This document shows, piece after piece, positions 3,516 through 58,173 of a DNA stretch of 64,000 bases. The first letter of the stretch is position 1, and each line of letters starts with the position of its first letter. Under the pieces are notes generated by a model. It made no database searches. It was not told where the DNA came from and saw only the letters and a list, made by a program, of their open reading frames with translations. The stretch is from IMG/VR virus record IMGVR_UViG_3300050120_000230, positions 351,410 to 415,409 of that record; one strand, given 5' to 3'. The translations under genes were made by a program, and so were the position numbers.

Positions 3516-4858
3516 AACGGAATGTTGTCGTGATAGGCGGTGTCGATCATCGTTTGTATTTGATCCGGCGAAACCAGCTTGAGCACGTTCTTCGCATTCG
3601 GCCCAATCTTGCTGAGCACATCATGCACGGTCATCGGCCGGGCTTTTTTCCAAGACAGTTGTGCCTTGCGTTCGCGGCGCGTTTGTCCGTTCTGCCTGAC
3701 CGGCCGCAGCGCCCACTTCACGATGCTCTCTCCAATATCGGTCACACCGAGTTCGGCGAGAGCTTTCAAAGTGGTGGGTTCCGTCAGCAATGCGATATCG
3801 GCGCGAGTCAGATAGGCTTCCTTGATGAACTCAGGAAGATGTTCTGCGATGACAGACCAAGCCTCTTCGTGAATTTTGGCAATCTCAAACAAATGAGTCA
3901 CGGCGCCGACGCTCAACCGAATGTGAGTGAAGAACCCACTGAGACCATCGCGCACCCCACCATAAAGTTCGTCGCTCGAATAGAACGATTCGAAAAAGTC
4001 GTGCGTATTCTTCGCAGCGAAGTGCGCTGATTTTCCGGTCTTCAACAGTTCCGGCCATTCCTTCATCAGGAACTTGCCTTGTTCGTTGTCGCCACCTTCG
4101 TCATCGCCGTAGAACAGAATGCGAGACAGGTCTTCGACGGAGTCCACCATCACTGGATAGTCTCCAAACGTCTCTGCGGATTGGCGGCGGACGTTATGGA
4201 GCATCTCAGCGACACGCACCGATTGCTTGCTGAAGAACACCGCCTGCGTCGGCTCGTTGGGGTGAATGATACCCTGCCCCGTCTTGTCCGCAACGCCAGA
4301 GTATCCCAGTGCACGGAACACTTTGTTCCATGCGGCGGGGAGACTGCCGCCAAGCTGTCCTGCAACGACCATGGTCACATGCCAGATGGCGAATGCATAT
4401 GGGTTGGTGATGGTGTCGAGGGTTCGAGCCGTCGAGATCGATTTTTCGATGAATGCATCCCAGAACTCATCGTCACGATCTTCATCATAGGCGCGAGAGA
4501 ACTTGGGTAGAATGATGCTGCCATATAGGCCATGCAGCATCTCTTTGTCGGCTTCGAACTCTCCCGCAGAGTAGTGAGCGAGATCGAGAATCTTGCCGAG
4601 TGCTTCTAGGACATAGACAAAAGGACGGTCGGCTGCGAAAGGCACACTACCATGTTCGATTTGATGCCAGTACGCCTGCACAGGATAGGCGTAGATGCCC
4701 AATGGCGTGTTGTAGGTTGTCTTGGGATTGAGGCCAACCTTGGGAATGTCAACGAAGGTGATGTAGACGTTCGGGTCTGAGGCATATTTTCGCAACTCGG
4801 AGACCACGTCGGGTCTCCGTTCAAGCAAAACATTTTCGAAGAGTTCGGAAACGATCAT
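3512..4858 (-). CDS. Hypothetical protein, possibly virion-associated
   Basis: Long ORF, MIVSELFE N-terminus, TAAATA upstream at 4888-4883. Confidence 0.65.
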   Translation of the reverse strand: MIVSELFENVLLERRPDVVSELRKYASDPNVYITFVDIPKVGLNPKTTYNTPLGIYAYPVQAYWHQIEHGSVPFAADRPFVYVLEALGKILDLAHYSAGEFEADKEMLHGLYGSIILPKFSRAYDEDRDDEFWDAFIEKSISTARTLDTITNPYAFAIWHVTMVVAGQLGGSLPAAWNKVFRALGYSGVADKTGQGIIHPNEPTQAVFFSKQSVRVAEMLHNVRRQSAETFGDYPVMVDSVEDLSRILFYGDDEGGDNEQGKFLMKEWPELLKTGKSAHFAAKNTHDFFESFYSSDELYGGVRDGLSGFFTHIRLSVGAVTHLFEIAKIHEEAWSVIAEHLPEFIKEAYLTRADIALLTEPTTLKALAELGVTDIGESIVKWALRPVRQNGQTRRERKAQLSWKKARPMTVHDVLSKIGPNAKNVLKLVSPDQIQTMIDTAYHDNIPF

Positions 4859-8243: not shown

Positions 8244-8596
8244 TCGTCGTCAATCTCTGCCGCCATCATCAGCATGGTCATGTCGCTGACGAACGCTTGT
8301 TGATTTCCGCTTACCGACAACGTTTGATACGGCCGATCATTGTTCATGCGACTGTGGAGAAACCACGCGTCACCTTTCACTGCCCAACGACGTTCTCCAT
8401 GCCATAGAACGAAGAAGCATACCCCACCAATGGTTCGACGCATTGTGATCGAATGTCCTTCGCGAACCCAATCTCGGTCAAAACGCTGTTCGGCCGGGGA
8501 GACCGCGTTGCGACGCTCTTCCAACAGGTGGCTAACCAACCGTTGCGAGAACTGCTTGACGGATACTGATTCGACGGGGATGGCGGGCTCAGACAT
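8240..8596 (-). CDS. Hypothetical protein
   Basis: Coupled ORF. Confidence 0.55.
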   Translation of the reverse strand: MSEPAIPVESVSVKQFSQRLVSHLLEERRNAVSPAEQRFDRDWVREGHSITMRRTIGGVCFFVLWHGERRWAVKGDAWFLHSRMNNDRPYQTLSVSGNQQAFVSDMTMLMMAAEIDDE

Positions 8597-21703: not shown

Positions 21704-21810
21704 GGTCGAATAGCTCAGTGGTAGAGCAGCGCGATAATGGAGGGCTCCGATACGTAAGCGGTCCTGTGAAGTTATCGCGTGTGTCGGTGGTTCGAACCCA
21801 TCTTCGACTT
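21704..21810 (+). tRNA. tRNA-like gene with about 35 extra nt in the anticodon arm
   Basis: Canonical acceptor/D/T arms; 10-bp GCGCGATAAT/GTTATCGCGT stem enclosing 32 nt. Confidence 0.7.
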
Positions 21811-21859: not shown

Positions 21860-21972
21860 GATTCCGTAGCTCAGTTGGTAGAGCAGCGAACTCATCTAAT
21901 CCCTCCCATGAGGTTACGGGAGGTATTACTTAAATTCGCGGGTCCTCGGTTCGAGTCCGAGCGGAGTCACCA
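21860..21972 (+). tRNA. tRNA (possibly CAT anticodon) with 37-nt insert or intron in the anticodon loop
   Basis: GCGAA/TTCGC stem encloses 44 nt starting CTCAT and ending AA; encoded CCA. Confidence 0.7.
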
Positions 21973-21975
21973 AAT

Positions 21976-22063
21976 GCCCCCGTGGGCCGAGCGGTCGAAG
22001 GCCACGGTCTCTAAAACCGATGGAGAAATCCCAGCGCAGGTTCGAATCCTGTCGGGGGTGCCA
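21976..22063 (+). tRNA. Amber suppressor tRNA (CTA), type II, G73
   Basis: Loop CTCTAAA in CGGT/ACCG stem; long variable arm; GCAGG-TTCGAAT-CCTGT; CCA. Confidence 0.85.
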
Positions 22064-24864: not shown

Positions 24865-26205
24865 TTAGCCGTGCTCACCGGGCGGCGGCAGGGTCACCGG
24901 CGCGGCCACGGGGGCAGCGGCCGGGGGAGCCGGAGGGGCCGGGGGAGCGACGACCACGGTCGTTGCGACCACAGCCACCGGCTTGCAGGAACCACCGGCG
25001 CGACGCATCGCTTCGGCAACGTCCTTGTCTTCGGCGAGAAGCTCGCAGGCGACTTGCGTCATGCCCATCGAGTTCAGTTCGCGCGAATTCTTCAGACGGA
25101 CGCAGTTCCGGTCGGTCCAAGTGCTGGCCGCCGAGAAGCCGAAGGTGATGCCTTGGCCACCGACCGAGGACGAACCCATGCAGGTATCGACACCGGCCGT
25201 CAGCGGGGCGGCGTAGGCGGTGCCGACCGGGTTGCGCTTCTGCGCTTCGTTGCTGATGTTGACGCTCGTGCTGGTGTTCTGCGCGGCGTTGTTACCGGCG
25301 TTCGACTGGGTGTTGGTCGAGTTGCCGGAGTTCTTGGTGCCGCTGACAGCCGTCTGCGCTTGGCTGTTGTGGGCGTCCTGCGACTGGCCTTGGCTGGCGT
25401 TGCCGGAGTCGGCGATGCCTTGCTGTTGGCCTTGGCCTTGACCTTGGACATTCTTGTTGTCGTTGGCAGAGTTGCCCGACGCCAAAACCGACGACGACGT
25501 GTTGTCGGAGTTCAGCTTGGTGGTGTTGCCGTTGTTGCCGTTGTTACCGGCATTGACGGTGCCCGAGTTCGTGGTCGCGGTGCCGCCCTTGACGCTGGCG
25601 TCGGCGTGGTTGTCCACGTTGCCGGAGTTGTTGCCGCCGAGATTGGTGTTGTTGCCGCCGAGATTGGTGGTGGTGTTCGTGCCGGTCAGCGTGTTGCTGC
25701 CGTTGGTGTTGGTCTGGGTGCCGCCCTTGACGCTGGCATCACCACCAGTGGTGTTGCCGTTGTTGGAGCCGCCGGTCACGTTGCCCGAGCCATGGGAATC
25801 CACGTTGCCGGAGGCGATGGCCGAGCCGTTGGCGTTGGTGACCGCGCCGCCGACAGTGTTTCCGACAGTGCCGCCGGTCACATCAGCGTGGCCGCTGTTG
25901 GTGTTCAGATTGGCCGACGACGTGGCGGTGTTGGTGATCGGAGCCGCCGCCGTGATCGCGGTGTTGTTCGAGCCTTGGTTGGCTTGGATCGTCCCGGTCT
26001 GGGAGTTGCCGATGGCCGAGGCCGACGACAGACCAGACGAGTTGGTGATCGGAGCCGAAAGGGTCGGCGACTCATTGTTCGTCAGCGTGGAGCCGAGCGA
26101 GTTGGAGCCGGTGTTGGTTTGCGTGACACCGGGGTCGGTGGCGAACGCCGGGCTGGCGATCAGGGCGATGGCCGCTGACGCGATGAGGAGCTTTCTGAAA
26201 TTCAT
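24865..26205 (-). CDS. Secreted low-complexity N/G/S/T-rich protein with Cys-containing C-terminal domain
   Basis: Signal peptide ending AFA; repeated DASVKGGT and TNLGGNN; strong codon bias. Confidence 0.75.
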   Translation of the reverse strand: MNFRKLLIASAAIALIASPAFATDPGVTQTNTGSNSLGSTLTNNESPTLSAPITNSSGLSSASAIGNSQTGTIQANQGSNNTAITAAAPITNTATSSANLNTNSGHADVTGGTVGNTVGGAVTNANGSAIASGNVDSHGSGNVTGGSNNGNTTGGDASVKGGTQTNTNGSNTLTGTNTTTNLGGNNTNLGGNNSGNVDNHADASVKGGTATTNSGTVNAGNNGNNGNTTKLNSDNTSSSVLASGNSANDNKNVQGQGQGQQQGIADSGNASQGQSQDAHNSQAQTAVSGTKNSGNSTNTQSNAGNNAAQNTSTSVNISNEAQKRNPVGTAYAAPLTAGVDTCMGSSSVGGQGITFGFSAASTWTDRNCVRLKNSRELNSMGMTQVACELLAEDKDVAEAMRRAGGSCKPVAVVATTVVVAPPAPPAPPAAAPVAAPVTLPPPGEHG

Positions 26206-27109: not shown

Positions 27110-27188
27110 TGGCGGTGCGAACCCACGGAGGGCTTTCGCCCTCTTCCGCTTTCAAGGCGGACGCCATAAGCCTCTCGACCACAGCACC
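27110..27188 (-). pseudogene. tRNA-Ser(TGA) with T-arm/acceptor deletion
   Basis: Intact D, anticodon and variable arms, but GTGGGTTCG joins directly to CACCGCCA (about 11 nt missing). Confidence 0.7.
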
Positions 27189-27197
27189 GTATACTAA

Positions 27198-27274
27198 TGG
27201 GGTGATCGACGGGGCTCGAACCCGCGACCTGAAGATTCACAGTCTTCCGCTCTACCAACTGAGCTACGACCACC
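27198..27274 (-). tRNA. tRNA-His(GTG), canonical G-1:C73 type
   Basis: G-GTGGTCG...GAAGA CTGTGAA TCTTC...CGATCAC-C-CCA. Confidence 0.92.
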
Positions 27275-27317
27275 ATAAATGTCGGCTTGACCCGACAAGA
27301 AACGACTTCCTGTCAGT

Positions 27318-27936
27318 TCAAGGCGACAACGCCAGAAGCAGACGGTCGATGCCAATGGCCCAACCCACGCCTTCGGCGTATCGGCCGCCTCCGGCAATCT
27401 GCTTTTGTGCACCGAGCGCCGAACACTCAACCTCGAATCCATCCTCGACGTAGTAGGTCAAGCCACGCTTAACCGAATCGTTGAAGGTGTAATCTAGGCC
27501 GAGCTTGTCGAGACAGTTCCGCAAAAGCCCAGAGGCTTCATCGGCGCCATTCTCAACGTTCCCGAGAATTTCGATCCCAAACTGGGTGAACTCTCGATAG
27601 CGCCCGGCTTGCGGCCGTTCGTAGCGGTAGCAGCGGGAGACATAGAAAATGCGCTTGGAGGCACATTTCTTTGCCCACGACTCTCGCCAGATTTCCTGCA
27701 CCAGTCCAGTCACCTCGGGGATCAAGCAGACCGGGCGGCCTCCTTTGTCCTCGAAAGACCACATCTGATTCACGATCTCCGGCCCGGCCTTGTCAATGAA
27801 GGTCTGCTGACCCCACAAAGCCGGAAGAATTACTTCATCGAAGCCTGCTTCAATGAACCAACCCCCGGAGGATTTCGATGGTCTGGGTATAGGCTCTCGC
27901 CTCATCCCCTTCGATCAATCGTGTTCCACGCAACAT
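27318..27936 (-). CDS. hisS: Minimal histidyl-tRNA synthetase catalytic core; frameshift at G5 run 27866-27862
   Basis: MLRGTRL start after GGAG RBS; CLIPEVT, YRYERPQAGRYREFTQFGIE, RGLTYY, GGGRY, GWAIGIDRL. Confidence 0.75.
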
Positions 27937-27959
27937 TTTCTTCTCTCCAAAAAATTACC

Positions 27960-28068
27960 AAGCTGGGCAGGATTTGAACCTGCGGTTCCCACTCTCGAAC
28001 GGTTATGCGCGACCGATTTGAGCAAGAACTAGCGCATCAGAGCCCTTAGACCTCTCGGGCACCGGCTT
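27960..28068 (-). tRNA. tRNA-like gene with expanded anticodon arm
   Basis: AAGCCGG/CCAGCTT acceptor, CCC/GGG D-stem, GCAGG-TTCAAAT-CCTGC; central insert with TGCGC/GCGCA helix. Confidence 0.6.
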
Positions 28069-28073
28069 GGAAA

Positions 28074-28241
28074 TTATGCATTGCGAAGTTGTGCCTTCAG
28101 TTCAGCAATCTCTTGCATGATCTTCGGGACGCTGACTTCGCGTGATGTTGAATCCTTCTTACCCAATGAGGTACGAAGGAACTGCTCAAGATCGATGATC
28201 CGGTCATGTAGCTTGAGCTTCTTCTTGTCGATGCGGCTCAT
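28074..28241 (-). CDS. 55-aa basic helical protein (not in ORF track)
   Basis: MSRIDKKKLKLHDRII...AQLRNA; ATGA-coupled to upstream ORF. Confidence 0.55.
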   Translation of the reverse strand: MSRIDKKKLKLHDRIIDLEQFLRTSLGKKDSTSREVSVPKIMQEIAELKAQLRNA

Positions 28242-28459
28242 ACGTCGGTCGCCTTCCTGTGATTGCGATAGTCGCGCTCACGCTCGGCCACGATCTTGGA
28301 ATCGACCGTCCCACGAAAAACCTTCATCACTCGCCATCCACGACCTTCGTCGTCGAAATCGAGAATCCTGCCTTCGACCGCGAACTTGGAAGGAAGCCAC
28401 GACGTGAACTCGTCTCCGTTCGCTCGCTTTAGTTTGCATTGCGTATGAGTAGCCATCAT
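28238..28459 (-). CDS. Hypothetical protein inside tRNA operon
   Basis: AAGGAGG RBS. Confidence 0.65.
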   Translation of the reverse strand: MMATHTQCKLKRANGDEFTSWLPSKFAVEGRILDFDDEGRGWRVMKVFRGTVDSKIVAERERDYRNHRKATDV

Positions 28460-28497
28460 GACTGCCTCCTTTGTTATGGCCCGCAGGCCGGTTGAAT

Positions 28498-28571
28498 TGG
28501 TACTGACTGTAAGAATCGAACTTACATAAGCGGTTCCACAAACCGCCGCTCTACCATTGAGCTAAGCCAGC
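28498..28571 (-). tRNA. tRNA-His(GTG), alphaproteobacterial type (no G-1, A73)
   Basis: T-GCTGGCT...GCGGT TTGTGGA ACCGC...AGTCAGT-A-CCA. Confidence 0.9.
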
Positions 28572-35442: not shown

Positions 35443-35771
35443 CCAAACCAGCGCATTTTGAACAGAAGAGCATCGTATTCGCTATCGAATACGATTTGCA
35501 TGTAGGTTGAAGAAATCATCTGATCCCACTCCCCATTTTTACGACGAAATTGGTCAATTCTGAGAGAGTGGGGGTTGGGGCACCCCCAGTCGCGGCCGGT
35601 TCGTTTGCTCTTTCCCGCAACCTGTTGTTCGCTTGTGAACACAAGTTTCCACGGAGAACGCAGGTTTTCGCCAGCCCAATCTAGGATGTCATCTCGTAGG
35701 GCGAAAAATCTCTTATTCGGATCGTCACCATAATCTTCGTAGAAAGTGCGATCAAGAAAGAGGATGTTCAT
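35439..35771 (-). CDS. Small motif-family protein
   Basis: FDSEYDALLFKMRWFG. Confidence 0.6.
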   Translation of the reverse strand: MNILFLDRTFYEDYGDDPNKRFFALRDDILDWAGENLRSPWKLVFTSEQQVAGKSKRTGRDWGCPNPHSLRIDQFRRKNGEWDQMISSTYMQIVFDSEYDALLFKMRWFG

Positions 35772-37324
35772 CCAAGTTTCAGCTTCTTCAGTTCTTCGAG
35801 TTCGTCGTTGTAAACGGCCTTGAGACGATCCGGGGACGCGAGAATAGCCTCGTATTCAGCGATGGCAAGGTTCAGTTCACCGATTTTGGTGTTAACATCC
35901 TGCTCGAAGGCTTTGGTCCACCGATAGGTCGGCAGGCTCACAACCCGATCCAATTGCTTGTCATCGAGCTTGAGCTTTGCCTTCGTGACCACCGAAGTCA
36001 CATCGGTTTCCACTGCGTTGCGATCAGCGAACGTTCCAAGGCGTTTGGTGAATTGATCCTTGAACAGCGCCGCCAGAGCGTGCCAGTAGTTGCGCTCATA
36101 GATCGTGTCGGCTCGCAGTTTCTCGAACCGCTTGGTATACCAGCCCAACCGCCAGACTGTGAAGTCCTGAACGAGTTCTTCGGGCGTGGCGTAGGTGCGG
36201 ATAGCGTTACCGCCCCAGCCGATCACGACAATGCGCTCCGTGGTTTTCTCGGCGAGCTTGAAGAATTTGATAGCCTCATCTTCGGTCCATGCTTTGCGAG
36301 CCGGGATGCGGTTCTTGAACTTTTTGCCCTGATCGACGTATTCCTCGACGCGAGCAGCTTGCGGGCCAAGATAGCCGCGCTTGAACTTCACGGTGATGTC
36401 GATGCAATCGGTGGAGCGATCCGTGAAACCCATGACCGGGTTCTCGTTCTCGTCTTCCATTTTGATGAGCTTCGAACGGAAGCTGTCGATCTTTTCACCC
36501 GGCGGCAATTCGGTGATCTGGATAGTCGAGGTGTCCAAAATCTTCAGCTTACCGGTGAACTCCCACTGATTTGGACCGAGATTCTTCACACCGACGTTGT
36601 AGCGGGCGAAGTGGGGTTCGAGGCCCTTGATCGGCTTTCCGGCCAACGCATCCTGTGTCGCTTGGATGATGTTCTTGAGAGAACGCGGTAGGATTTCAGT
36701 GCTCCAACCCACAGCCACGCCCGCCACGCCGTTGAGAAGCACGGTGGGGATCAACGGGAGGAAATGCACCGGTTGCACGTTCGATCCGTCGTAGTTTTCT
36801 TCCAGCGGAACGAGATCAAGATCGCGATAGAGGAAAGCTTCGGCCGCCTTGGCGCGGCGAACCTCTGTATAGCGAGGGGCGCCAATGCCTTCCACGGGCG
36901 CCACACGGCTACCGAACTGACCAAGCCCTTCGATCAGGGGCACGTTGTTCTTGAACGGGGCGGCCAATTTACCGATGGCGTCGTTCGCCGACACTTCGCC
37001 GTGGACGTATAGGCGCTCGAAACCCATGAGCCCTGAGAGGGCGAACGTCTTGATTTTGTCCGCACGATGCCGCAGCAGCCACAGAGCGATGCGTTGACCG
37101 GACTTCAGGCCATCTTCCACAGAAGGAATGGCCCGCGTCGAACAGACGTAGATCGCATACTCCCGGCTATCCCGCAGGAGATAATCCGTGGGCTTCGGTT
37201 GAATCTTGGTCTTCTGGTTGGCCGCGAAGTCTTTCCACTCGGCGTCGGTCAGTCCGAATTGGGACAGGGACGTGCCGAAAGGCAGAGTCGGGGCGGGAAC
37301 GGTTTTGGGCATAATGGCTTTCAA
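35768..37324 (-). CDS. Type II DNA topoisomerase, breakage-reunion subunit (T4 gp52/GyrA-like)
   Basis: RAIPSVEDGLKSGQR, YVHGE, G.FG, APRYT catalytic Tyr, ITELP. Confidence 0.93.
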   Translation of the reverse strand: MKAIMPKTVPAPTLPFGTSLSQFGLTDAEWKDFAANQKTKIQPKPTDYLLRDSREYAIYVCSTRAIPSVEDGLKSGQRIALWLLRHRADKIKTFALSGLMGFERLYVHGEVSANDAIGKLAAPFKNNVPLIEGLGQFGSRVAPVEGIGAPRYTEVRRAKAAEAFLYRDLDLVPLEENYDGSNVQPVHFLPLIPTVLLNGVAGVAVGWSTEILPRSLKNIIQATQDALAGKPIKGLEPHFARYNVGVKNLGPNQWEFTGKLKILDTSTIQITELPPGEKIDSFRSKLIKMEDENENPVMGFTDRSTDCIDITVKFKRGYLGPQAARVEEYVDQGKKFKNRIPARKAWTEDEAIKFFKLAEKTTERIVVIGWGGNAIRTYATPEELVQDFTVWRLGWYTKRFEKLRADTIYERNYWHALAALFKDQFTKRLGTFADRNAVETDVTSVVTKAKLKLDDKQLDRVVSLPTYRWTKAFEQDVNTKIGELNLAIAEYEAILASPDRLKAVYNDELEELKKLKLG

Positions 37325-37363
37325 AAATAACGAGGTAGGAAAATAAAATTGGTAAACGAGATA

Positions 37364-37714
37364 TTAGGACCAACGGAGTTTGAAATGCAAGGCGTCCGTT
37401 GCGCTCTCAAAATAATAGATCGGTTTCTTCATGTCGGAGGATCGCATCCAAAGCTGCCATCCTGAACCGATATGCTGTGTCATCCAGTCGTCGAACAGCT
37501 TCGTCGCTTCATCGTCGTCAAATACCCCGTGCGGTAGAACAGGGATCACATTGAAAGGGAACAAGAACTCAAGGAAGCGAACCAAATCATTCGGGTTGTG
37601 CTCAGACGGTGCGAAGCCCATATCGAGAACTTCTTGACGGATTTTACCGTCTTCGTCCCAGATATACTCCCAGCGCATCCGATGGCGTTCGTCGAGGTAA
37701 GCGGCGGGGATCAT
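37364..37714 (-). CDS. Small motif-family protein
   Basis: FESATDALHFKLRWS. Confidence 0.6.
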   Translation of the reverse strand: MIPAAYLDERHRMRWEYIWDEDGKIRQEVLDMGFAPSEHNPNDLVRFLEFLFPFNVIPVLPHGVFDDDEATKLFDDWMTQHIGSGWQLWMRSSDMKKPIYYFESATDALHFKLRWS

Positions 37715-37989
37715 GCGGACAACAACTTGAACATGGCGGCATCCTGCATTCTGGCAAACCAGAACGTATATTGAAAGTAGCCATCGCTGAAATTGCGCTG
37801 TCTCGACGGATAATGTTGTCGAGAACCCTTGGCATCCTTGAACTTGGTCTTGGAAAAGAACACGTTGCCCCGAGAGTTCGTGCGAACTGAATCGATCAAT
37901 TCTTCCTCAGTTTCGAACTTTCGTCCATCGACTTCCACTTTCCAGAACCGTCCCTTGGGTGGAGTCTTCGTAAAGGTCACGCTCGACAT
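37711..37989 (-). CDS. Small motif-family protein
   Basis: FARMQDAAMFKLL. Confidence 0.6.
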   Translation of the reverse strand: MSSVTFTKTPPKGRFWKVEVDGRKFETEEELIDSVRTNSRGNVFFSKTKFKDAKGSRQHYPSRQRNFSDGYFQYTFWFARMQDAAMFKLLSA

Positions 37990-37992
37990 TGG

Positions 37993-38214
37993 CTACTTGC
38001 CGCTCCAAAAAAGCTTGAAGAGGGCGGCGTGGTGCTTACTCGTGAACGTGGCGCGGATGACGTGCAGATTGTTGTTCGTCTCCCGCGCGGTCATGTTTGG
38101 ATGAAGATCAGTTGGGACGTTTTCGGCACACCAATCCTGCACAGCGACGATGTCGCTGACCACGACGATGACTGAAAATTTCTCCGCGCTATTTTCCATC
38201 ACATCCCGATCCAT
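37993..38214 (-). CDS. Small motif-family protein
   Basis: FTSKHHAALFKLFW. Confidence 0.55.
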   Translation of the reverse strand: MDRDVMENSAEKFSVIVVVSDIVAVQDWCAENVPTDLHPNMTARETNNNLHVIRATFTSKHHAALFKLFWSGK

Positions 38215-40103
38215 TCCTTGCGCTTATCAGCGAGCTTCGGGTTGAACAACAGATCAAGGCCGCTGGACAGCTTCCCATCGTCGGTGACGGCCCGCGCCTT
38301 CGGGTTTTCGAGAACCCAGCGCCAGTCATCGCGCTTCAGTGCAGCGAGGCCCTTGGCGCGAGTGATCTCCCATCCCTTGTGTGCGTCCGAATCGAAGTCG
38401 TGATAGTTCTCGTTATACCAGTATTTCCGAACCTTGCCTTTGACCGCGACGATCAGAGGGGTGTCGAAAAGATAGACGAACGGCGGCCGAGCCGGATCGA
38501 ACAGTTCGGGCCAGAGCGTGTAGAAGAAGTTCACGAGAAGCGCGGCGATGTTCTTCCCGTCTTCGTCCGCATCGGTCGTGATGTAGACCTTGCCGTAGCG
38601 AAGCAAGTGACGGTTGACGCGCTCACCGGGCACCAGACCGATAGCGGTCATGATCTTGGCAAGAGCTTCGTTTTCCAGAACGCTCTTCGGGCTTTCGCCA
38701 AAAACGTTCAGCACTTTGCCTCGAAGCGGCAAGCCGCCATGAATGTTCGGATCACGCGCTTCGACCATGCCGGAGATGGCGCTCTTGCCTTCGCCGAGGA
38801 AGAGGATGCACTTCGAACGATCACCGCCGCAGGCGTCTTCGAGGTCTTCCACCTTGGTGCGAAGGTTTTTCTTCGCCAGTTTCTTGGCGTCGTCGTTGTC
38901 TTTCTTCTGAGTCCGCTCCGCGCATCGCGCATAAACGTCCTCGATCCATTCCGGGTTCTTACGAATGACACCCTTGAAGAAATCGGTGTCGTCGAGCGCA
39001 CGCTTGATGATCGCGCCGACTTCTTCGTTGATGAGTCGGGTCTTCGATTGGCTATCGAAGGACGGCTCATCCATTTCGGTGATGTTGTAGAGCAGCAAGC
39101 CATCAGCCAAATCCGACCGGTTCGGAGTCAGTTTGCGCTTCTTGCTCTCACGTTCAAGGCTCGAAAGCATCCCGCTGAAGAAAATGCGTCGGAACGTTTC
39201 GATGTGGATGCCACCGCTGAATGTCGGAATGGCGTTGACGAGACTGTGGTTGAACTCGGAGATCGCCGAATTCGTGGAGTCGAAGAACTGGGGAACCAGC
39301 CAGAACCGGCTTGAGAAGCCGGGTTGGGTGATCTCGATGGTGATCGGCTTCACGCCGGGGAACAGGGTTTTCTCGACCCCACCCTTCGCGATCTGCACGC
39401 GCTCACCGTTGTAGAACACCTTCAGTTCTGGATAGCACAGCGCCACTTCGGTCATCCGGGCGCGGATGAACCGTTCCGGCAACCGCCGGTCATGGAAAAC
39501 GTGCTCACTGAGACGAAACTCAATGCGCGTCCCATGGTCGCCTTTGAACTTGGTTTTCAGCGGAACGATGAAGGGGTCTTCGATCATCAGGTCGCCTGAT
39601 TTCGGATTGTCTCCCTCAGAGAACCGCTGACTGAAGTGCTTGCCGTCTCGACGAATATCCATCTGAAAATATTCGGAGCAGAAATTGACGATGGAGCCGC
39701 CGACGCCGTTCAGGCCGCGTGTGGCGCCACGGTTTTCCTCGAAGTTCCGACCAGCTTTCGTCTCGGTAAGAGCCATCGTGGCTTCATACTGCTTGTGCTT
39801 CTTGTCGAACTCGATGGGGATGCCCCGACCGTTATCCTCGACCACCACGGTCAAAGTGACGGGGTCAAACGTGATTTCGAGCTTGTCACCCTGCTTGTGA
39901 GTGACAACCTCGTCGATGGCATTGTCCATCACTTCACGGAAGGCCGTGAAGAGCGCAGGAACCCACGTTGTCTCACGAGCGACGGGCTTGCCGTCCTCGT
40001 ATTCCAAAACCGTTTGGGTATGCGGGTCTCGCGAGCCGAGATACATCTCGGTACGCAGACGGGCGTGCTGGAAATCGTTGAGCTTCTTAATACGCTCGTT
40101 CAT
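38199..40103 (-). CDS. Type II DNA topoisomerase ATPase/TOPRIM subunit (T4 gp39+60/GyrB-like)
   Basis: EVMDNAIDE, DNGRGIP, GLNGVG, EGKSA, PLRGK, TDADEDG, KGL. Confidence 0.93.
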   Translation of the reverse strand: MNERIKKLNDFQHARLRTEMYLGSRDPHTQTVLEYEDGKPVARETTWVPALFTAFREVMDNAIDEVVTHKQGDKLEITFDPVTLTVVVEDNGRGIPIEFDKKHKQYEATMALTETKAGRNFEENRGATRGLNGVGGSIVNFCSEYFQMDIRRDGKHFSQRFSEGDNPKSGDLMIEDPFIVPLKTKFKGDHGTRIEFRLSEHVFHDRRLPERFIRARMTEVALCYPELKVFYNGERVQIAKGGVEKTLFPGVKPITIEITQPGFSSRFWLVPQFFDSTNSAISEFNHSLVNAIPTFSGGIHIETFRRIFFSGMLSSLERESKKRKLTPNRSDLADGLLLYNITEMDEPSFDSQSKTRLINEEVGAIIKRALDDTDFFKGVIRKNPEWIEDVYARCAERTQKKDNDDAKKLAKKNLRTKVEDLEDACGGDRSKCILFLGEGKSAISGMVEARDPNIHGGLPLRGKVLNVFGESPKSVLENEALAKIMTAIGLVPGERVNRHLLRYGKVYITTDADEDGKNIAALLVNFFYTLWPELFDPARPPFVYLFDTPLIVAVKGKVRKYWYNENYHDFDSDAHKGWEITRAKGLAALKRDDWRWVLENPKARAVTDDGKLSSGLDLLFNPKLADKRKEWIGM

Positions 40104-40246
40104 CAAACGGTTACCTAAAAAGTTACGAACCCATTTATCCATGACGATGGGTGAATGGAATATGATTTTCGTTACACCAAATTAGCCGAGGGGGTCAAGC
40201 CCCGCCGTTTTGCATAAATACTCGACAATCTTTTGGGAGATCAGCC

Positions 40247-42434: not shown

Positions 42435-43754
42435 ATGAGTAGTGAAATTGACAAAGACAACCTGCACTGTTCTTTCTGTGGAAAGAACACTACTGAAGTC
42501 AAGAAGCTCATCCAAGGTCCCGATGTTTACATCTGCGACGAATGCATTGACCTGTGCTACGACCTTCTGAGGCCGGGTGAACGCAAGAATGGTTCTCCGG
42601 CCACGGCTGATGGAGACATCGTCCTCGCCGAACCGGAAGAGGAAGAAGATGGCATCCCCACCCCTCGCGAAATCCGCGATCACCTAGATGAATATGTGAT
42701 CGGTCAGGAAGCAGCAAAGATGACCATTGCTGTCGCCGTCTACAATCACTTCAAGCGTCTCGAAACTCCGGTCGTGAACGGGATCGAGATCGAAAAATCC
42801 AACATCCTCATGGTTGGCCCCACGGGTTCGGGTAAGACTTTGATCGCCCAAAGCATTGCCCGGATGCTTGATGTGCCATTGGCCATCGCCGACGCCACTT
42901 CATTGACTGAGGCTGGTTATGTTGGTGACGATGTGGAGAGCATCATCTCCCGCCTGCTGCAATCGGCAAACAACAACATCAAAGCTGCCGAACGCGGGAT
43001 CATTTTCATCGACGAGATCGACAAGAAACGCGGTAAGGGTGGCGACGGTTCCGGCACTCGCGACGTGTCCGGTGAAGGCGTCCAACAAGCTCTCCTGAAA
43101 CTCCTAGAGGGCTCTGACATTCTCGTTCCGGCTTCCGGCAAACGGACTCCCGGTTCAGAGATGGTGAAAATCAGCACTAAGAACATCTTGTTCATCGTCG
43201 GCGGCGCCTTCGTTGGTTTGGAAAAAATCATCGCCCGCGCGCAAACCAAGGATGCCTCCGGTATTGGATTCAGCGCCAAATCGGTCGGCCCAAACAAGCT
43301 GACCAACGACATGCTGTTGACCAAGATGGAACCAGAGCACCTCGTGAAGTTTGGAATGATCCCCGAGATCATCGGCCGCCTGCCGGTCTACGCGACCCTG
43401 ACCGAACTCACCGAAGAGCAACTTGTGCGGGTTCTGACGGAACCCAAGAACGCCGTGACTAAGCAGTTCCTCGCTCGGTTCAGTCTCGATGAGATCGAAT
43501 TGGAATTTACCCCGGAGGCGCTTCTAGATATCGCGAAGACGGCGAGGGTTCGTAAGACCGGCGCGCGCGGCCTGCGTAGCGTGATTGAGAATGCACTCAC
43601 CAAAATACAGTTCGAGCTTCCCGAATTGGCCGAGCGTGGTGTTTGTAAAGTCATCATCGGTCGAGGGGTCATAGAGGGCACTACCGAACCCGAGTATGTC
43701 TACACGGGAGCAGTTGTTGAAGAGACTGAACAAAAGGCTCTTCCGGCTGAGTAA
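42435..43754 (+). CDS. clpX: ATP-dependent Clp protease ATPase subunit ClpX
   Basis: CSFCGK zinc finger, GPTGSGKT, DEIDK, RDVSGEGVQQALLK, IGF loop, TGARGLR. Confidence 0.96.
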   Translation: MSSEIDKDNLHCSFCGKNTTEVKKLIQGPDVYICDECIDLCYDLLRPGERKNGSPATADGDIVLAEPEEEEDGIPTPREIRDHLDEYVIGQEAAKMTIAVAVYNHFKRLETPVVNGIEIEKSNILMVGPTGSGKTLIAQSIARMLDVPLAIADATSLTEAGYVGDDVESIISRLLQSANNNIKAAERGIIFIDEIDKKRGKGGDGSGTRDVSGEGVQQALLKLLEGSDILVPASGKRTPGSEMVKISTKNILFIVGGAFVGLEKIIARAQTKDASGIGFSAKSVGPNKLTNDMLLTKMEPEHLVKFGMIPEIIGRLPVYATLTELTEEQLVRVLTEPKNAVTKQFLARFSLDEIELEFTPEALLDIAKTARVRKTGARGLRSVIENALTKIQFELPELAERGVCKVIIGRGVIEGTTEPEYVYTGAVVEETEQKALPAE

Positions 43755-56844: not shown

Positions 56845-58173
56845 ATGCGTTACGAATTTCCGGCAGACATCACGCTTGACGAAGTTCGTCGCGCTGTAGC
56901 CAACGCCAACGCGCGTTTCGCGAAGAACGTGCCCCTCGACGGCTATCCGACTGATCCCGACCCGGAGTTCACCCCGGAAGAAATCGAGCAGGGCTATCGC
57001 ATTTCGACTCCGAATTTCTTCATCGAGGCCGAGCGTGGCGATCACACGATTTTCAACTATATCGTGGCGTTCGAAGGTTCCTTCCCGTCACCGACGACCG
57101 GTGAGACGGCGCTTGACCGCGAATACGCGATTCTGCGCGAGTGCCGTGGTCTAACGTTCTGCTCGACTACCGGCCGGATCATCGCGCGCAAATACGCGAA
57201 GTTCTTCAATCTGAACGAAAAGCCGGAGACGCAGGCGAACATCATCGACTGGACGCAGCCGCACGACATCCTCGAAAAGCTCGATGGCAGCATGATTACG
57301 CCGTTCTATGTCGGCGACATGGAAGAGATCACCCCGGAGAAGATTCGTTGGGCGACCAAGATGGGCCTGACCGATGTCGCCAAGCCGGTGGACGAATGGG
57401 TCGAGCAGCACCCGCACTACGCGGCGTGGGCCGCCCACACGATGTATGCCGACTTCACGCCGATCTTCGAATGGTGCTCGCGTCAGCAGCGCATCGTCAT
57501 CGACTATCCCGAAGATCGGCTGGTTCTCACGGCTATCCGCAACAACAAGACCGGCGAGTATCTGTCGCGCGAAGCCATGCTCGCGGCCGAACGGTCGGGG
57601 ATCGAGATCGTGCGGGCGCTGCCGGGCTCCGTCGAGAACATCGAAACCTTCATGCAGGAAGCCTATGATCTGGAAGGGGCCGAAGGTTACGTGGTTCGTT
57701 TCACCGATGGGCACATGCTCAAGGTGAAAGGTGCGTGGTATTGCCAAATCCACAAGACCAAGGAACTGCTGACGTTCGAGAAGGACGTGCTGTCTCTGAT
57801 CTTGGAAGATCGACTGGATGACGCCAAGGCGTTCATGGACGACCAAGATCGTGCGCGCGTGGAAGCGTTCAATGAAGCTTTCACTGCGGCCCTTATCGAG
57901 ACCGGGGAACGCCTGCGTGCCATCGCCGCCGAAGGTGCCCGTGTGACCGGTGGGGACAAGAAGAAGTTCGCCACCGAATTCATGCCGTCGCTGGCGCTCG
58001 CCGACCATGAAGCGACGATTGTCTTCCGTATCAACTCGGGTAAGGACCCGGTTGAACAAATCCGCATGACGCTCATGAAGAACGTCGGCACGCAGCCGCG
58101 TGTCAACGGCATTCGGCATCTGCTCGGCGGCCTGCGGTGGGATGCATATCGTGATCCGGTGGTTGAAGAATGA
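56845..58173 (+). CDS. RNA ligase 1 (T4 RnlA-like)
   Basis: RECRG, KFFN, EKLDGS, FE, EGYV, KVK..WY. Confidence 0.88.
   Translation: MRYEFPADITLDEVRRAVANANARFAKNVPLDGYPTDPDPEFTPEEIEQGYRISTPNFFIEAERGDHTIFNYIVAFEGSFPSPTTGETALDREYAILRECRGLTFCSTTGRIIARKYAKFFNLNEKPETQANIIDWTQPHDILEKLDGSMITPFYVGDMEEITPEKIRWATKMGLTDVAKPVDEWVEQHPHYAAWAAHTMYADFTPIFEWCSRQQRIVIDYPEDRLVLTAIRNNKTGEYLSREAMLAAERSGIEIVRALPGSVENIETFMQEAYDLEGAEGYVVRFTDGHMLKVKGAWYCQIHKTKELLTFEKDVLSLILEDRLDDAKAFMDDQDRARVEAFNEAFTAALIETGERLRAIAAEGARVTGGDKKKFATEFMPSLALADHEATIVFRINSGKDPVEQIRMTLMKNVGTQPRVNGIRHLLGGLRWDAYRDPVVEE

Follow-up and report, generated by a model that had tools for sequence, protein, structure and literature searches.

A predicted minimal histidyl-tRNA synthetase of a huge phage, free of histidine and apparently gated by a +1 frameshift at its only histidine codon

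Introduction

The closest described arrangement to the one analyzed here is the autoregulatory +1 frameshift of prfB, the gene for release factor 2, in which a Shine-Dalgarno (SD)-like run and a 3-nt spacer precede a slippery CUU codon in the P site and a slowly decoded UGA in the A site, whose decoder depends on the gene's own product. The frame-0 dead end is short, and there is no downstream RNA structure. In the locus studied here the layout is the same, but the A-site codon is a sense codon (His, CAU or CAC) rather than UGA, the sensed molecule would be an aminoacyl-tRNA rather than a protein factor, the P-site codon is GUU in about a quarter of cases, and the cassette has arisen at three positions in one gene family.

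Ribosomes stalled at His codons report the level of His-tRNA(His) in the his operon attenuator. Likewise, low cognate aminoacyl-tRNA in the A site raises +1 shifting at slippery sites, and hungry A-site codons, slippery P-site codons and upstream SD-like sequences are the established promoters of +1 shifting (PMC2377451). Hungry-codon shifting has been treated as an error or a laboratory tool, and its natural use is called unclear in a major review (PMC5009743). Here it would be a dedicated, conserved switch, with frame choice rather than transcription termination as the output.

Full-length bacterial HisRS (TIGR00442; PDB 1KMM, 1ADJ and 4RDX) shares with the present protein the catalytic fold, motifs 2 and 3, the HisRS-specific LxPExT and RGLxYY motifs and the motif-2 loop of the G-1:C73 type. 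The present protein is about half the size, has no insertion domain, no 11-residue motif-3 loop and no anticodon-binding domain, carries Gln in place of Glu64 and is essentially free of histidine. HisZ, the HisRS paralogue that regulates ATP phosphoribosyltransferase, is also a HisRS-derived protein without an anticodon-binding domain, and databases give the mini-HisRS this name. However, HisZ is about 300-390 aa long, keeps the insertion region, lacks adenylation activity (PMC9437257) and works with HisG, whereas the mini-HisRS keeps the catalytic residues and sits beside tRNA-His genes. Finally, a man-made pair consisting of a G-1-type synthetase and a G-1:C73 tRNA works without cross-charging in a cell whose own system lacks G-1 (PMC3875453, PMC3064791). 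That pair uses a full-length enzyme and carries a CUA anticodon, while the pair proposed here would be natural, phage-borne, minimal and frameshift-gated.

Results

Two types of tRNA-His flank a HisRS catalytic core

The DNA analyzed (the window) is a stretch of 64,000 nt from the virus record IMGVR_UViG_3300050120_000230. A first-pass annotation had described in it two tRNA-His genes of different identity type and, directly upstream of the G-1:C73 one, a HisRS of roughly 205 aa without an anticodon-binding domain and most of the insertion domain. This observation was confirmed. The features are as follows.

27198 to 27274, minus strand: tRNA-His(GUG) of the canonical bacterial type, with an encoded G-1 (27274), G1:C72, C73 and an encoded CCA; it begins 43 nt after the mini-HisRS stop codon and is probably cotranscribed.
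27318 to 27854, minus strand: +1-frame part of the mini-HisRS, 178 codons plus a TGA stop, containing LIPEVT, motif 2 (RCYRYERPQAGRYREFTQ), RGLTYY and motif 3 (GGGRY), with no His codon.
27850 to 27936, minus strand: frame-0 leader, with ATG, 27 sense codons homologous to the N-terminal helix of in-frame relatives, then CAT (His) and a TGA stop; the termination product is a 28-aa peptide.
27853 to 27866, minus strand: +1 frameshift cassette GGGGG TTG GTT CAT, with the SD-like run (27866-27862), a 3-nt spacer, the P-site GUU (27858-27856) and the A-site His codon CAU (27855-27853); C27855 would be skipped.
27943 to 27948, minus strand: ribosome-binding site GGAGAG, 6 nt before ATG 27936.
28498 to 28571, minus strand: tRNA-His(GUG) without G-1, with U-1, G1:U72, A73 and an encoded CCA.

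ARAGORN placed the tRNA-His(GTG) genes at 27198-27273 and 28498-28571, both on the minus strand, and Rfam scored them at 68.2 and 67.8 bits, respectively. The ends were read from the sequence. The first tRNA is g|GTGGTCG...CGATCAC|C|CCA, with an 8-nt D-loop, and has all the features of canonical bacterial tRNA-His. The second is t|GCTGGCT...AGTCAGT|A|CCA, and it shows the absence of G-1, the A73, the G1:U72 and the GUG anticodon of the RRCH clade (Rhodobacteraceae, Rhizobiales, Caulobacterales, Hyphomonadaceae) of alphaproteobacteria (PMC3064791). However, it lacks two further features of that type, C3:G70 and a 9-nt D-loop with U20a, having instead U3:A70 and a 7-nt D-loop, AAUGGUA.

The gene between them starts at ATG 27936 and reads 27 codons in frame 0 (MLRGTRLIEGDEARAYTQTIEILRGLV). 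It then needs a +1 shift at GTT CAT (27858-27853) and continues from ATT 27854 to the stop at 27320-27318, giving 27 + 178 = 205 aa, in agreement with the first-pass estimate. The leader was assigned by comparison with the in-frame homologues P0050, P0062, P0066, P0105, L011, L016 and L021 (L numbers designate mini-HisRS loci).

The product is a HisRS core by sequence. Pfam found only tRNA-synt_His (E 1.5e-17), and NCBIfam hisS scored 139.6 bits (below the curated cut-off of 286.75) against 74.8 bits for hisZ (cut-off 271.65). The protein aligned with Thermus thermophilus HisRS residues 34-156 and 242-316 only and ends after motif 3; the insertion domain, an 11-residue motif-3 loop and the whole C-terminal domain are therefore absent. 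Motif 2 (fRxERPq.GRyRqF) and motif 3, with their arginines, were invariant in a 15-sequence family alignment, as were P73, E74, T76, R162, G163, L164, Y166 and Y167 of the histidine-binding motifs, for which LIPEVT and RGLTYY align to the T. thermophilus enzyme. The ATP-, histidine- and tRNA-end-contacting residues considered were conserved family-wide, with the exception of Glu64 (T. thermophilus numbering), reported as essential for aminoacylation, which is Gln in the window (NQMW) and in every family member (Q57 of alignment A1). An AlphaFold model (pLDDT 84) had HisRS catalytic domains as its best matches, with query-normalised TM-scores of 0.80-0.85. A search of PHROGs returned no family match.

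A +1 frame transition is conserved at a His codon

The first-pass annotation treated the frame break as something to correct. In contrast, comparison of 67 nonredundant mini-HisRS loci indicated a conserved programmed +1 frameshift, the most interesting part of the locus. Thus, 47 of the 67 need a +1 shift, and all 47 carry (C/G)TT CA(T/C) in the only interval where the shift can occur, which in L006 is 9 nt wide. The loci come from independent assemblies, including huge phages, the cultured Sinorhizobium phage Phosso and isolate genomes of Pseudomonas, Paraburkholderia, Burkholderia, Chromobacterium, Thalassospira and Azospirillum. The cassette occurs at three different codon positions, about 27, 19 and 70, and the codon-70 case is nested in an in-frame clade with 95% branch support (SH-aLRT).

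Both parts of the gene are under codon-level purifying selection. Per-site entropy by index mod 3 was 1.11/0.72/1.66 upstream and 1.60/0.79/0.61 downstream, so that the wobble phase moves by +1 exactly at the site, while the heptamer itself is invariant. Among 41 aligned codon-27 genes the P-site codon was CUU in 29 and GUU in 12, and the next base was always C, so +1 re-pairing gives UUC. GUU, used in the window, re-pairs less well in +1 than CUU. A stop follows the His codon directly in only about 60% of genes.

The SD-like run usually lies three bases upstream of the P-site codon. Its predicted duplex energy with the anti-SD had a median of -9.3 kcal/mol in shifted genes, compared with +0.6 kcal/mol at the same codons of in-frame relatives (p 1.6e-6). 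All 12 GUU sites have a strong run (<= -9.3), whereas CUU sites range down to none, as in L012 and L042. Consensus folding revealed no conserved downstream structure (alifold -0.41), as in prfB. L036 reads CGG GGG TAT CTT CAT, and in L040 a phage release-factor gene with CGG GAG CGT CTT TGA C lies about 1 kb from the mini-HisRS.

The A-site codon is His in 47 of 47 genes, while the translated path is almost free of His, with 0 in 1066 leader codons and 3 in 8507 downstream residues. For comparison, His makes up 2.25% of the window's long ORFs, 0.66% of in-frame minis and 1.22% of full-length HisRS. It should be noted that CAY is partly forced once TTC is followed by an A-initial codon, and that all these statistics ignore phylogenetic nonindependence. 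Within the window the cassette pattern occurs once, in this gene, a single match that is not significant on its own (0.81 expected by chance).

Proposed pairing of the mini-HisRS with a G-1 tRNA-His

According to the first-pass annotation, one tRNA serves the host enzyme while the other is charged by an acceptor-stem-only phage enzyme, independent of the host and perhaps tolerant of altered anticodon arms. This interpretation was only partly supported, and indirectly. The enzyme keeps the canonical G-1-type residues, namely the Gln of the motif-2 loop (RPQ), replaced by Gly in the RRCH clade (PMC3937112), the Arg pair (R..R) and the GG pocket (DKGGR; PMC4357726), although the pocket is only partly kept across the family (DKGDR, DKADR). 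The co-occurrence of mini-HisRS and G-1 tRNA-His, proposed beforehand as a check, was examined in 22 mini-HisRS loci with a tRNA-His within 3-4 kb. Of these, 19 carry a G-1 type, often directly abutting the gene, while L010 and L069 have only a no-G-1 tRNA-His nearby. Phosso infects Sinorhizobium meliloti, whose clade lacks G-1, yet it has a G-1:C73 tRNA-His next to its mini-HisRS; no second tRNA-His was found in the first 58 kb of its genome, a search that left out the remaining ~410 kb. Published kinetics show that the two systems do not cross-charge (PMC3064791, PMC3875453) and predict mutual nonrecognition.

On the other hand, no evidence was found for tolerance of altered anticodon arms. 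The amber suppressor tRNA in the window, considered as a His-type substrate of an anticodon-blind enzyme, was rejected because it has G73 and a long variable arm and is Ser-like. Moreover, the family also lives in phages and bacteria whose tRNA-His is canonical, such as Pseudomonas and Paraburkholderia. Orthogonality is therefore a special case and not the reason the family exists.

Discussion

Most likely, the locus is a self-contained histidine-charging module of a huge phage, an explanation that we hold with moderate confidence. In this view, a class II catalytic core of 205 aa would histidylate tRNAs through the acceptor end (G-1:C73) alone, and it would be made only when a ribosome shifts +1 at GUU_CAU. 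With plenty of His-tRNA(His), the CAU would be read and translation would stop one codon later, giving the 28-aa peptide. With little His-tRNA(His), the A site would stay empty, the P-site tRNA would slip to UUC, and the enzyme would be completed. Since neither the leader nor the enzyme contains any other His codon, it could be finished without histidyl-tRNA, in a negative feedback loop on charged tRNA-His. Host-type His-tRNA would also read the sensor codon in an infected cell, and thus the loop would report total His-tRNA and not the phage tRNA alone. The G-1:C73 tRNA-His downstream would be the enzyme's own substrate, whereas the tRNA with U-1, G1:U72 and A73 would imitate the host type and be charged by the host enzyme, the host being inferred to be a Rhizobiales-like alphaproteobacterium. 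What the sequences themselves establish is the anatomy of the locus, the conservation of the frameshift and its cassette, the absence of His codons and the linkage to tRNA-His. In contrast, ribosomal slippage as the mechanism, its dependence on the His-tRNA level, the activity and specificity of the enzyme and the nature of the host are inferences without experimental support. Besides the loss of Glu64, the insertion domain that clamps the acceptor stem is absent, and hence activity may be weak or the substrate may differ.

The best-surviving alternative, although unlikely, is that the frameshift is programmed but constitutive, setting a fixed, low yield of enzyme or a fixed ratio of 28-aa peptide to enzyme without responding to His-tRNA, in which case the His codon and the absence of His elsewhere have other causes. 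In agreement with this, P-site slippage is modelled as the dominant factor in +1 shifting, with an A-site effect of about 2-fold (PMC2377451), and in-frame relatives are also His-poor (9 of 17 have no His), so that some of the depletion predates the cassette. However, the A-site codon is invariably His at three independent positions, residue 28 is not conserved in in-frame relatives (R, V, T, F, M), and the one remaining His codon on the message is exactly the one that is skipped. The gene product would make the molecule that reads that codon, the same logic as in prfB.

Less likely still, the protein might not charge tRNA, being instead a HisZ-like regulator or sensor, or an adenylate-forming enzyme that passes histidine to another acceptor, as amino-acid:carrier-protein ligases and other truncated synthetase paralogues do. 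RefSeq names the Burkholderia copy "ATP phosphoribosyltransferase regulatory subunit," two domains and Glu64 are missing, and the chromosomal copies in Pseudomonas and Paraburkholderia have no tRNA nearby. Against this stand the higher hisS score, the retention of the motif 2 and motif 3 arginines, RGLxYY, the acceptor-end contacts (Glu114, Arg115, Arg120, Arg122) and, at least in the window, the G-1 pocket glycines, the lack of adenylation activity in HisZ (PMC9437257) and the tight linkage to G-1 tRNA-His genes in phages. In addition, a catalytic-domain fragment of E. coli HisRS is reported to stay active (Augustine and Francklyn 1997).

An assembly error, a decaying pseudogene or a split gene is very improbable: although the shift in this window lies next to an assembled run of five G, a typical place for a sequencing error that would in any case change only this one copy and not the family pattern, most relatives have no homopolymer at the site (for example, CGG AGC TAT CTT CAT), the same break occurs in dozens of independent assemblies and isolate genomes, and both halves are under selection. 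Transcriptional slippage was likewise rejected, as most sites have no homopolymer. Independent initiation of the downstream part was rejected because there is no conserved start, +1-frame stops lie just before the site, many loci (L005-L009) have no start codon in the +1 frame after its last stop, and the codon-70 variant would cut the enzyme inside the CLIPE strand. A shift at CAU with the following stop in the A site was also rejected, since in L009, L010, L012, L017, L064-L068, Phosso and the Pseudomonas copies the next codon is CCA, CGA, CGC, CAA or GGA.

If the sensing model is correct, which we consider about as likely as not, a widespread family of histidine-free minimal HisRS enzymes, in huge phages and in Pseudomonas and Burkholderia chromosomes, would be translated only when His-tRNA(His) runs short, and this would be the first aminoacyl-tRNA synthetase autoregulated by frameshifting at its own cognate codon. 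It would extend the prfB principle, in which a gene's product decodes the very codon that gates its synthesis, from a stop codon to a sense codon and from a protein factor to an aminoacyl-tRNA, and would give hungry-codon frameshifting a physiological role. In phages of Rhizobiales-like hosts, the enzyme and its G-1:C73 tRNA would form a natural orthogonal charging pair, showing how a huge phage could keep histidine decoding running independently of the host HisRS. A natural HisRS of about 205 aa that presumably reads only the acceptor end would be a counterpart of engineered catalytic fragments and of ideas about primordial synthetases. The cassette is a compact candidate sensor for the charging level of one tRNA, and the enzyme and tRNA are a candidate small orthogonal pair.

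No previous description of this frameshift or of a mini-HisRS was found in the literature; a "tRNA synthetase" +1 cluster in PMC3711429 is classed there as phase variation and is not identified as HisRS. About 2,500 database proteins of this family are mostly mis-started or named HisZ, because gene callers do not model the shift.

Neighboring tRNA-like sequences

Megablast of the region against cultured phages matched only a tRNA-Ser fragment, and blastn of the no-G-1 tRNA against phages gave only partial matches to mycobacteriophage tRNA-His. Two tRNA-like elements, whose membership in the unit is uncertain, border the mini-HisRS and the G-1 tRNA-His.

27955 to 28066, minus strand: tRNA-like element directly upstream of the mini-HisRS, called by neither ARAGORN nor Rfam, with recognisable acceptor, D and T arms but an anticodon arm with a ~21-nt loop; it may be a processing site.
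27110 to 27188, minus strand: weak tRNA-like element of type II, Ser-like, just downstream of the G-1 tRNA-His (Rfam tRNA 23.9 bits, E 0.26, below the gathering score).

Two tRNA-His genes and an intervening HisRS-like gene

The window forms part of a 415-kb viral contig (IMGVR_UViG_3300050120_000230). ARAGORN and Rfam agreed on the presence of two tRNA-His(GUG) genes on the minus strand, between which lies a HisRS-like gene. The features of this region are as follows.

27198-27274, minus strand: tRNA-His(GUG) with an encoded G-1 opposite C73, G1:C72, an 8-nt D-loop and an encoded CCA.
28498-28571, minus strand: tRNA-His(GUG) with U at position -1, G1:U72, A73 and an encoded CCA.
27948-27943, minus strand: a good ribosome-binding site (GGAGAG).
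27936, minus strand: ATG start codon of the HisRS-like gene, preceded by that ribosome-binding site.
27852-27850, minus strand: TGA that closes frame 0, which reads MLRGTRLIEGDEARAYTQTIEILRGLVH.
To 27321, minus strand: the rest of the protein (IEAGFDEVILP...), in the +1 frame.

When both frames were joined at GTT|C|ATT, the product was 205 aa. The first-pass annotation, which had described two types of tRNA-His and a minimal HisRS of about this size in need of a frame correction, was therefore accurate in what it observed. tRNA-like elements flank the unit formed by the mini-HisRS and tRNA-His. The upstream one (27955-28066, minus strand) has good acceptor, D and T arms but a 21-nt anticodon loop, whereas the downstream one (27110-27188, minus strand) is a weak Ser-like type II match (23.9 bits); they may be processing signals or decayed tRNAs.

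Sequence and predicted structure of the protein

The protein matched the Pfam family tRNA-synt_His (E value, 1.5e-17) and scored 139.6 bits with the NCBIfam hisS model, compared with 74.8 bits with hisZ, both values being far below the cut-offs because half of the protein is missing. Against solved structures, it aligned to residues 34-156 and 242-316 of Thermus thermophilus HisRS, and three parts were absent: the insertion domain, an 11-residue loop in motif 3, and the whole anticodon-binding domain. For their part, LxPExT, motif 2 (RCYRYERPQAGRYREFTQ), RGLxYY and GGGRY are kept and are invariant in the family. Residues that contact the acceptor end in the HisRS-tRNA structure are also present, namely, Glu114, Arg115, Arg120, Arg122 and, in this window, the Gly-Gly pocket for G-1, whereas Glu64, reported as essential, is an invariant Gln. 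The motif-2 loop retains the Gln that characterizes G-1-type enzymes, which has been replaced by Gly in the RRCH alphaproteobacteria (Rhodobacteraceae, Rhizobiales, Caulobacterales and Hyphomonadaceae) (PMC3937112). An AlphaFold model of the in-frame relative P0050, which is 71% identical to the 195-aa ORF of the window in the family alignment, showed a pLDDT of 84 and a pTM of 0.81. Its best structural matches were HisRS catalytic domains, with query-normalized TM-scores of 0.80 to 0.85.

Distribution of the family

A total of 2,548 database proteins of 100 to 317 aa matched. In a library clustered at 50% identity, the top ∼40 hits were proteins of ∼200 aa matched end to end, and full-length HisRS appeared only from about 1e-36. 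The genes lie in huge-phage contigs of 250 to 600 kb, usually inside tRNA arrays, and they also occur in isolate genomes. Thalassospira, Azospirillum and Pararhizobium have copies, some with tRNA arrays. Two such isolate assemblies, those of Thalassospira xianhensis (locus L065, contig1, 423 kb) and Pararhizobium sp. BT-229 (locus L069), carry tRNA arrays next to a mini-HisRS and are possibly huge phages or episomes carried by the strains. L069 contains an in-frame mini-HisRS, a no-G-1 tRNA-His with G73, and a tRNA with the anticodon AUG that ARAGORN calls His.

Pseudomonas, Paraburkholderia, Burkholderia and Chromobacterium have stand-alone chromosomal or megaplasmid copies of the frameshifted gene (loci L071 to L088 and L145) in ordinary, nonphage surroundings, with no tRNA or phage genes nearby and with neighbors that include GNAT acetyltransferases, LysR regulators and a T6SS gene. 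In the tree, which was poorly resolved, the family was monophyletic against the sampled full-length HisRS sequences (support of 99), and the Pseudomonas/Burkholderia clade (support of 100) was nested among phage sequences. RefSeq gives the Burkholderia copy (L145) the HisZ name "ATP phosphoribosyltransferase regulatory subunit" and starts it out of frame. PHROGs showed no family for it, and a 2022 review of synthetase paralogues lists only HisZ for HisRS. Our literature searches, which did not extend to most papers in subscription journals, found no description of the frameshift or of the family.

Conservation of the programmed +1 frame break

To study the frame break, the relatives were translated. 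The same break was observed in loci L001 to L010, L012 and L013, while others were in frame. Across 67 nonredundant loci, 47 need a +1 shift, 19 are in frame and one is degraded. Every shifted gene has (C/G)TT CA(T/C) at the one place where the shift can happen; in L006, a +1-frame TAG and the 0-frame TGA leave only GTA GTT CAC TGA. Of the 120 closest database proteins, 106 lack the in-frame N terminus, because gene callers start them elsewhere.

The cassette sits at codon 27 in most genes, whereas it sits at codon 19 in L017, L018 and L046 (CGG AGG CGT CTT CAT). In L016, it is located at codon ∼70, inside the CLIPE motif (GTG TGT CTT CAT CCC TGA), and the nearest relatives of L016 are in frame (95% SH-aLRT support). 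In 41 aligned genes, the most variable codon position upstream was the third position of frame 0 (entropy of 1.66, compared with 1.11 and 0.72), while downstream it was the third position of frame +1 (1.60, compared with 0.79 and 0.61). The T of codon 27 and the CA of codon 28 never vary. For the family, as judged from assembled sequences, these results exclude readings of the break as an error, a pseudogene or a split gene.

The cassette is that of prfB

Three bases upstream of the P-site codon lies CGG AGG, AGG GGG or CGG AGC. The predicted pairing with the 16S tail showed a median of -9.3 kcal/mol, compared with +0.6 kcal/mol at the same codons of in-frame relatives (P = 1.6e-6, not corrected for relatedness; as in the other statistics, related sequences were treated as independent). 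The Arg24 codon is CGG or AGG in 38 of 41 shifted genes, whereas it is CGT or AGA in in-frame genes. All 12 genes with the poorer slippery codon GUU, including that of this window, have a strong SD-like run, while CUU genes range down to none. No downstream structure is conserved.

The published prfB consensus is CTT_TGA_C with an upstream SD-type stimulator (PMC3711429). Among the mini-HisRS loci, L036 reads CGG GGG TAT CTT CAT. In the phage contig L040 (IMGVR_UViG_3300013099_002757), a short release-factor gene (PCRF and RF-1 domains, GGQ motif) carries the classical prfB cassette CGG GAG CGT CTT TGA C (positions 4607-4622) and lies about 1 kb downstream of the mini-HisRS of that phage, which has the His-codon version, CGA GAG TAC CTT CAT C.

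The His codon as a probable sensor

The A-site codon is His in all 47 genes and at all three positions, whereas in-frame relatives have R, V, T, F or M at residue 28. The codon after it is a stop in only about 60% of genes, so the shift cannot depend on termination. The translated path avoids histidine almost completely, with 0 His in 1,066 leader codons and 3 in 8,507 downstream residues; 44 of the 47 genes have none, and neither does the protein of the window. For comparison, His accounts for 2.25% in the long ORFs of this window, 0.66% in in-frame mini-HisRS proteins and 1.22% in full-length HisRS. Canonical His positions are replaced: FRHERPQ becomes YRYERPQ, and FHQ becomes FTQ. The only His codon on the message is thus the one that is skipped in the productive path.

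Hungry A-site codons, slippery P sites and upstream SD-like sequences are the three established promoters of +1 shifting (PMC2377451). We propose a loop in which ample His-tRNA would lead to decoding of CAU and a 28-aa dead end, whereas scarce His-tRNA would lead to a stall, a +1 slip, and an enzyme that needs no His-tRNA to be completed and that makes His-tRNA. While the conserved break, its cassette and the scarcity of His codons are read directly from the sequences, this loop, including slippage of the ribosome, its response to His-tRNA and the charging activity of the protein, is inferred and not shown.

The two tRNAs and the possibility of an orthogonal pair

Of 48 nonredundant loci, 22 have a tRNA-His within 3 to 4 kb, and 19 of these are G-1 types. 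Some directly abut the gene, as in L002, L018, L006, L023, L029 and this window, at 43 nt. The no-G-1, G1:U72 type appears in L001, L002 (with U73), L003, L010 and L069. Both types occur together in L001, L002 and L003, and these three lie in the same poorly resolved clade as the cultured Sinorhizobium phage Phosso. Phosso (469 kb; host, Sinorhizobium meliloti) has the gene, the cassette CGA GGT TGT CTT CAT, and a G-1:C73 tRNA-His 220 nt upstream, and its annotation starts the CDS out of frame. The topoisomerase II large subunit of the window is closest, among cultured phages, to those of Phosso and Agrobacterium phage Atu_ph07, at about 54%, which is a weak pointer to a Rhizobiales-like host.

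Published work shows that Caulobacter crescentus HisRS depends on the anticodon and U72 (U72C costs 91-fold) and does not charge Escherichia coli tRNA, that G-1-type enzymes lose more than 100-fold without G-1, and that the E. coli pair is orthogonal in Caulobacter. The proposal of the first-pass annotation, according to which one tRNA serves the host enzyme and the other is charged by an acceptor-stem-only phage enzyme, is therefore plausible for this clade. However, it is not the general role of the family, which also occurs where tRNA-His is canonical, and the no-G-1 tRNA lacks C3:G70 and U20a. Nothing supports the additional suggestion that the enzyme tolerates altered anticodons. The interpretation is only partly supported.

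Other features of the window

The window contains an amber-suppressor tRNA(CUA) (21976-22063, plus strand) with a long variable arm and G73, so it is Ser-like. A relative (L002, positions 8379-8534) has two class-I tRNA(CUA) genes. Together, these genes may indicate TAG recoding in these phages. Two further tRNA genes (21704-21810 and 21860-21969, plus strand; Rfam scores of 46.6 and 53.5 bits, respectively) have insertions of about 40 nt in the anticodon loop that are too short for group I introns, and ARAGORN did not call them as such. A T4 Rnl1-type RNA ligase (56845-58173, plus strand; Pfam RNA_lig_T4_1, E value of 2.3e-30), the kind of enzyme that repairs tRNAs cut by host anticodon nucleases, was also found, together with topoisomerase II subunits (35768-40142) and a ClpX-like ATPase (42435-43754). 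Finally, a 446-aa ORF (24865-26205, minus strand) is extremely rich in Asn, Gly, Thr and Ser, with a Pro/Ala-rich C terminus.
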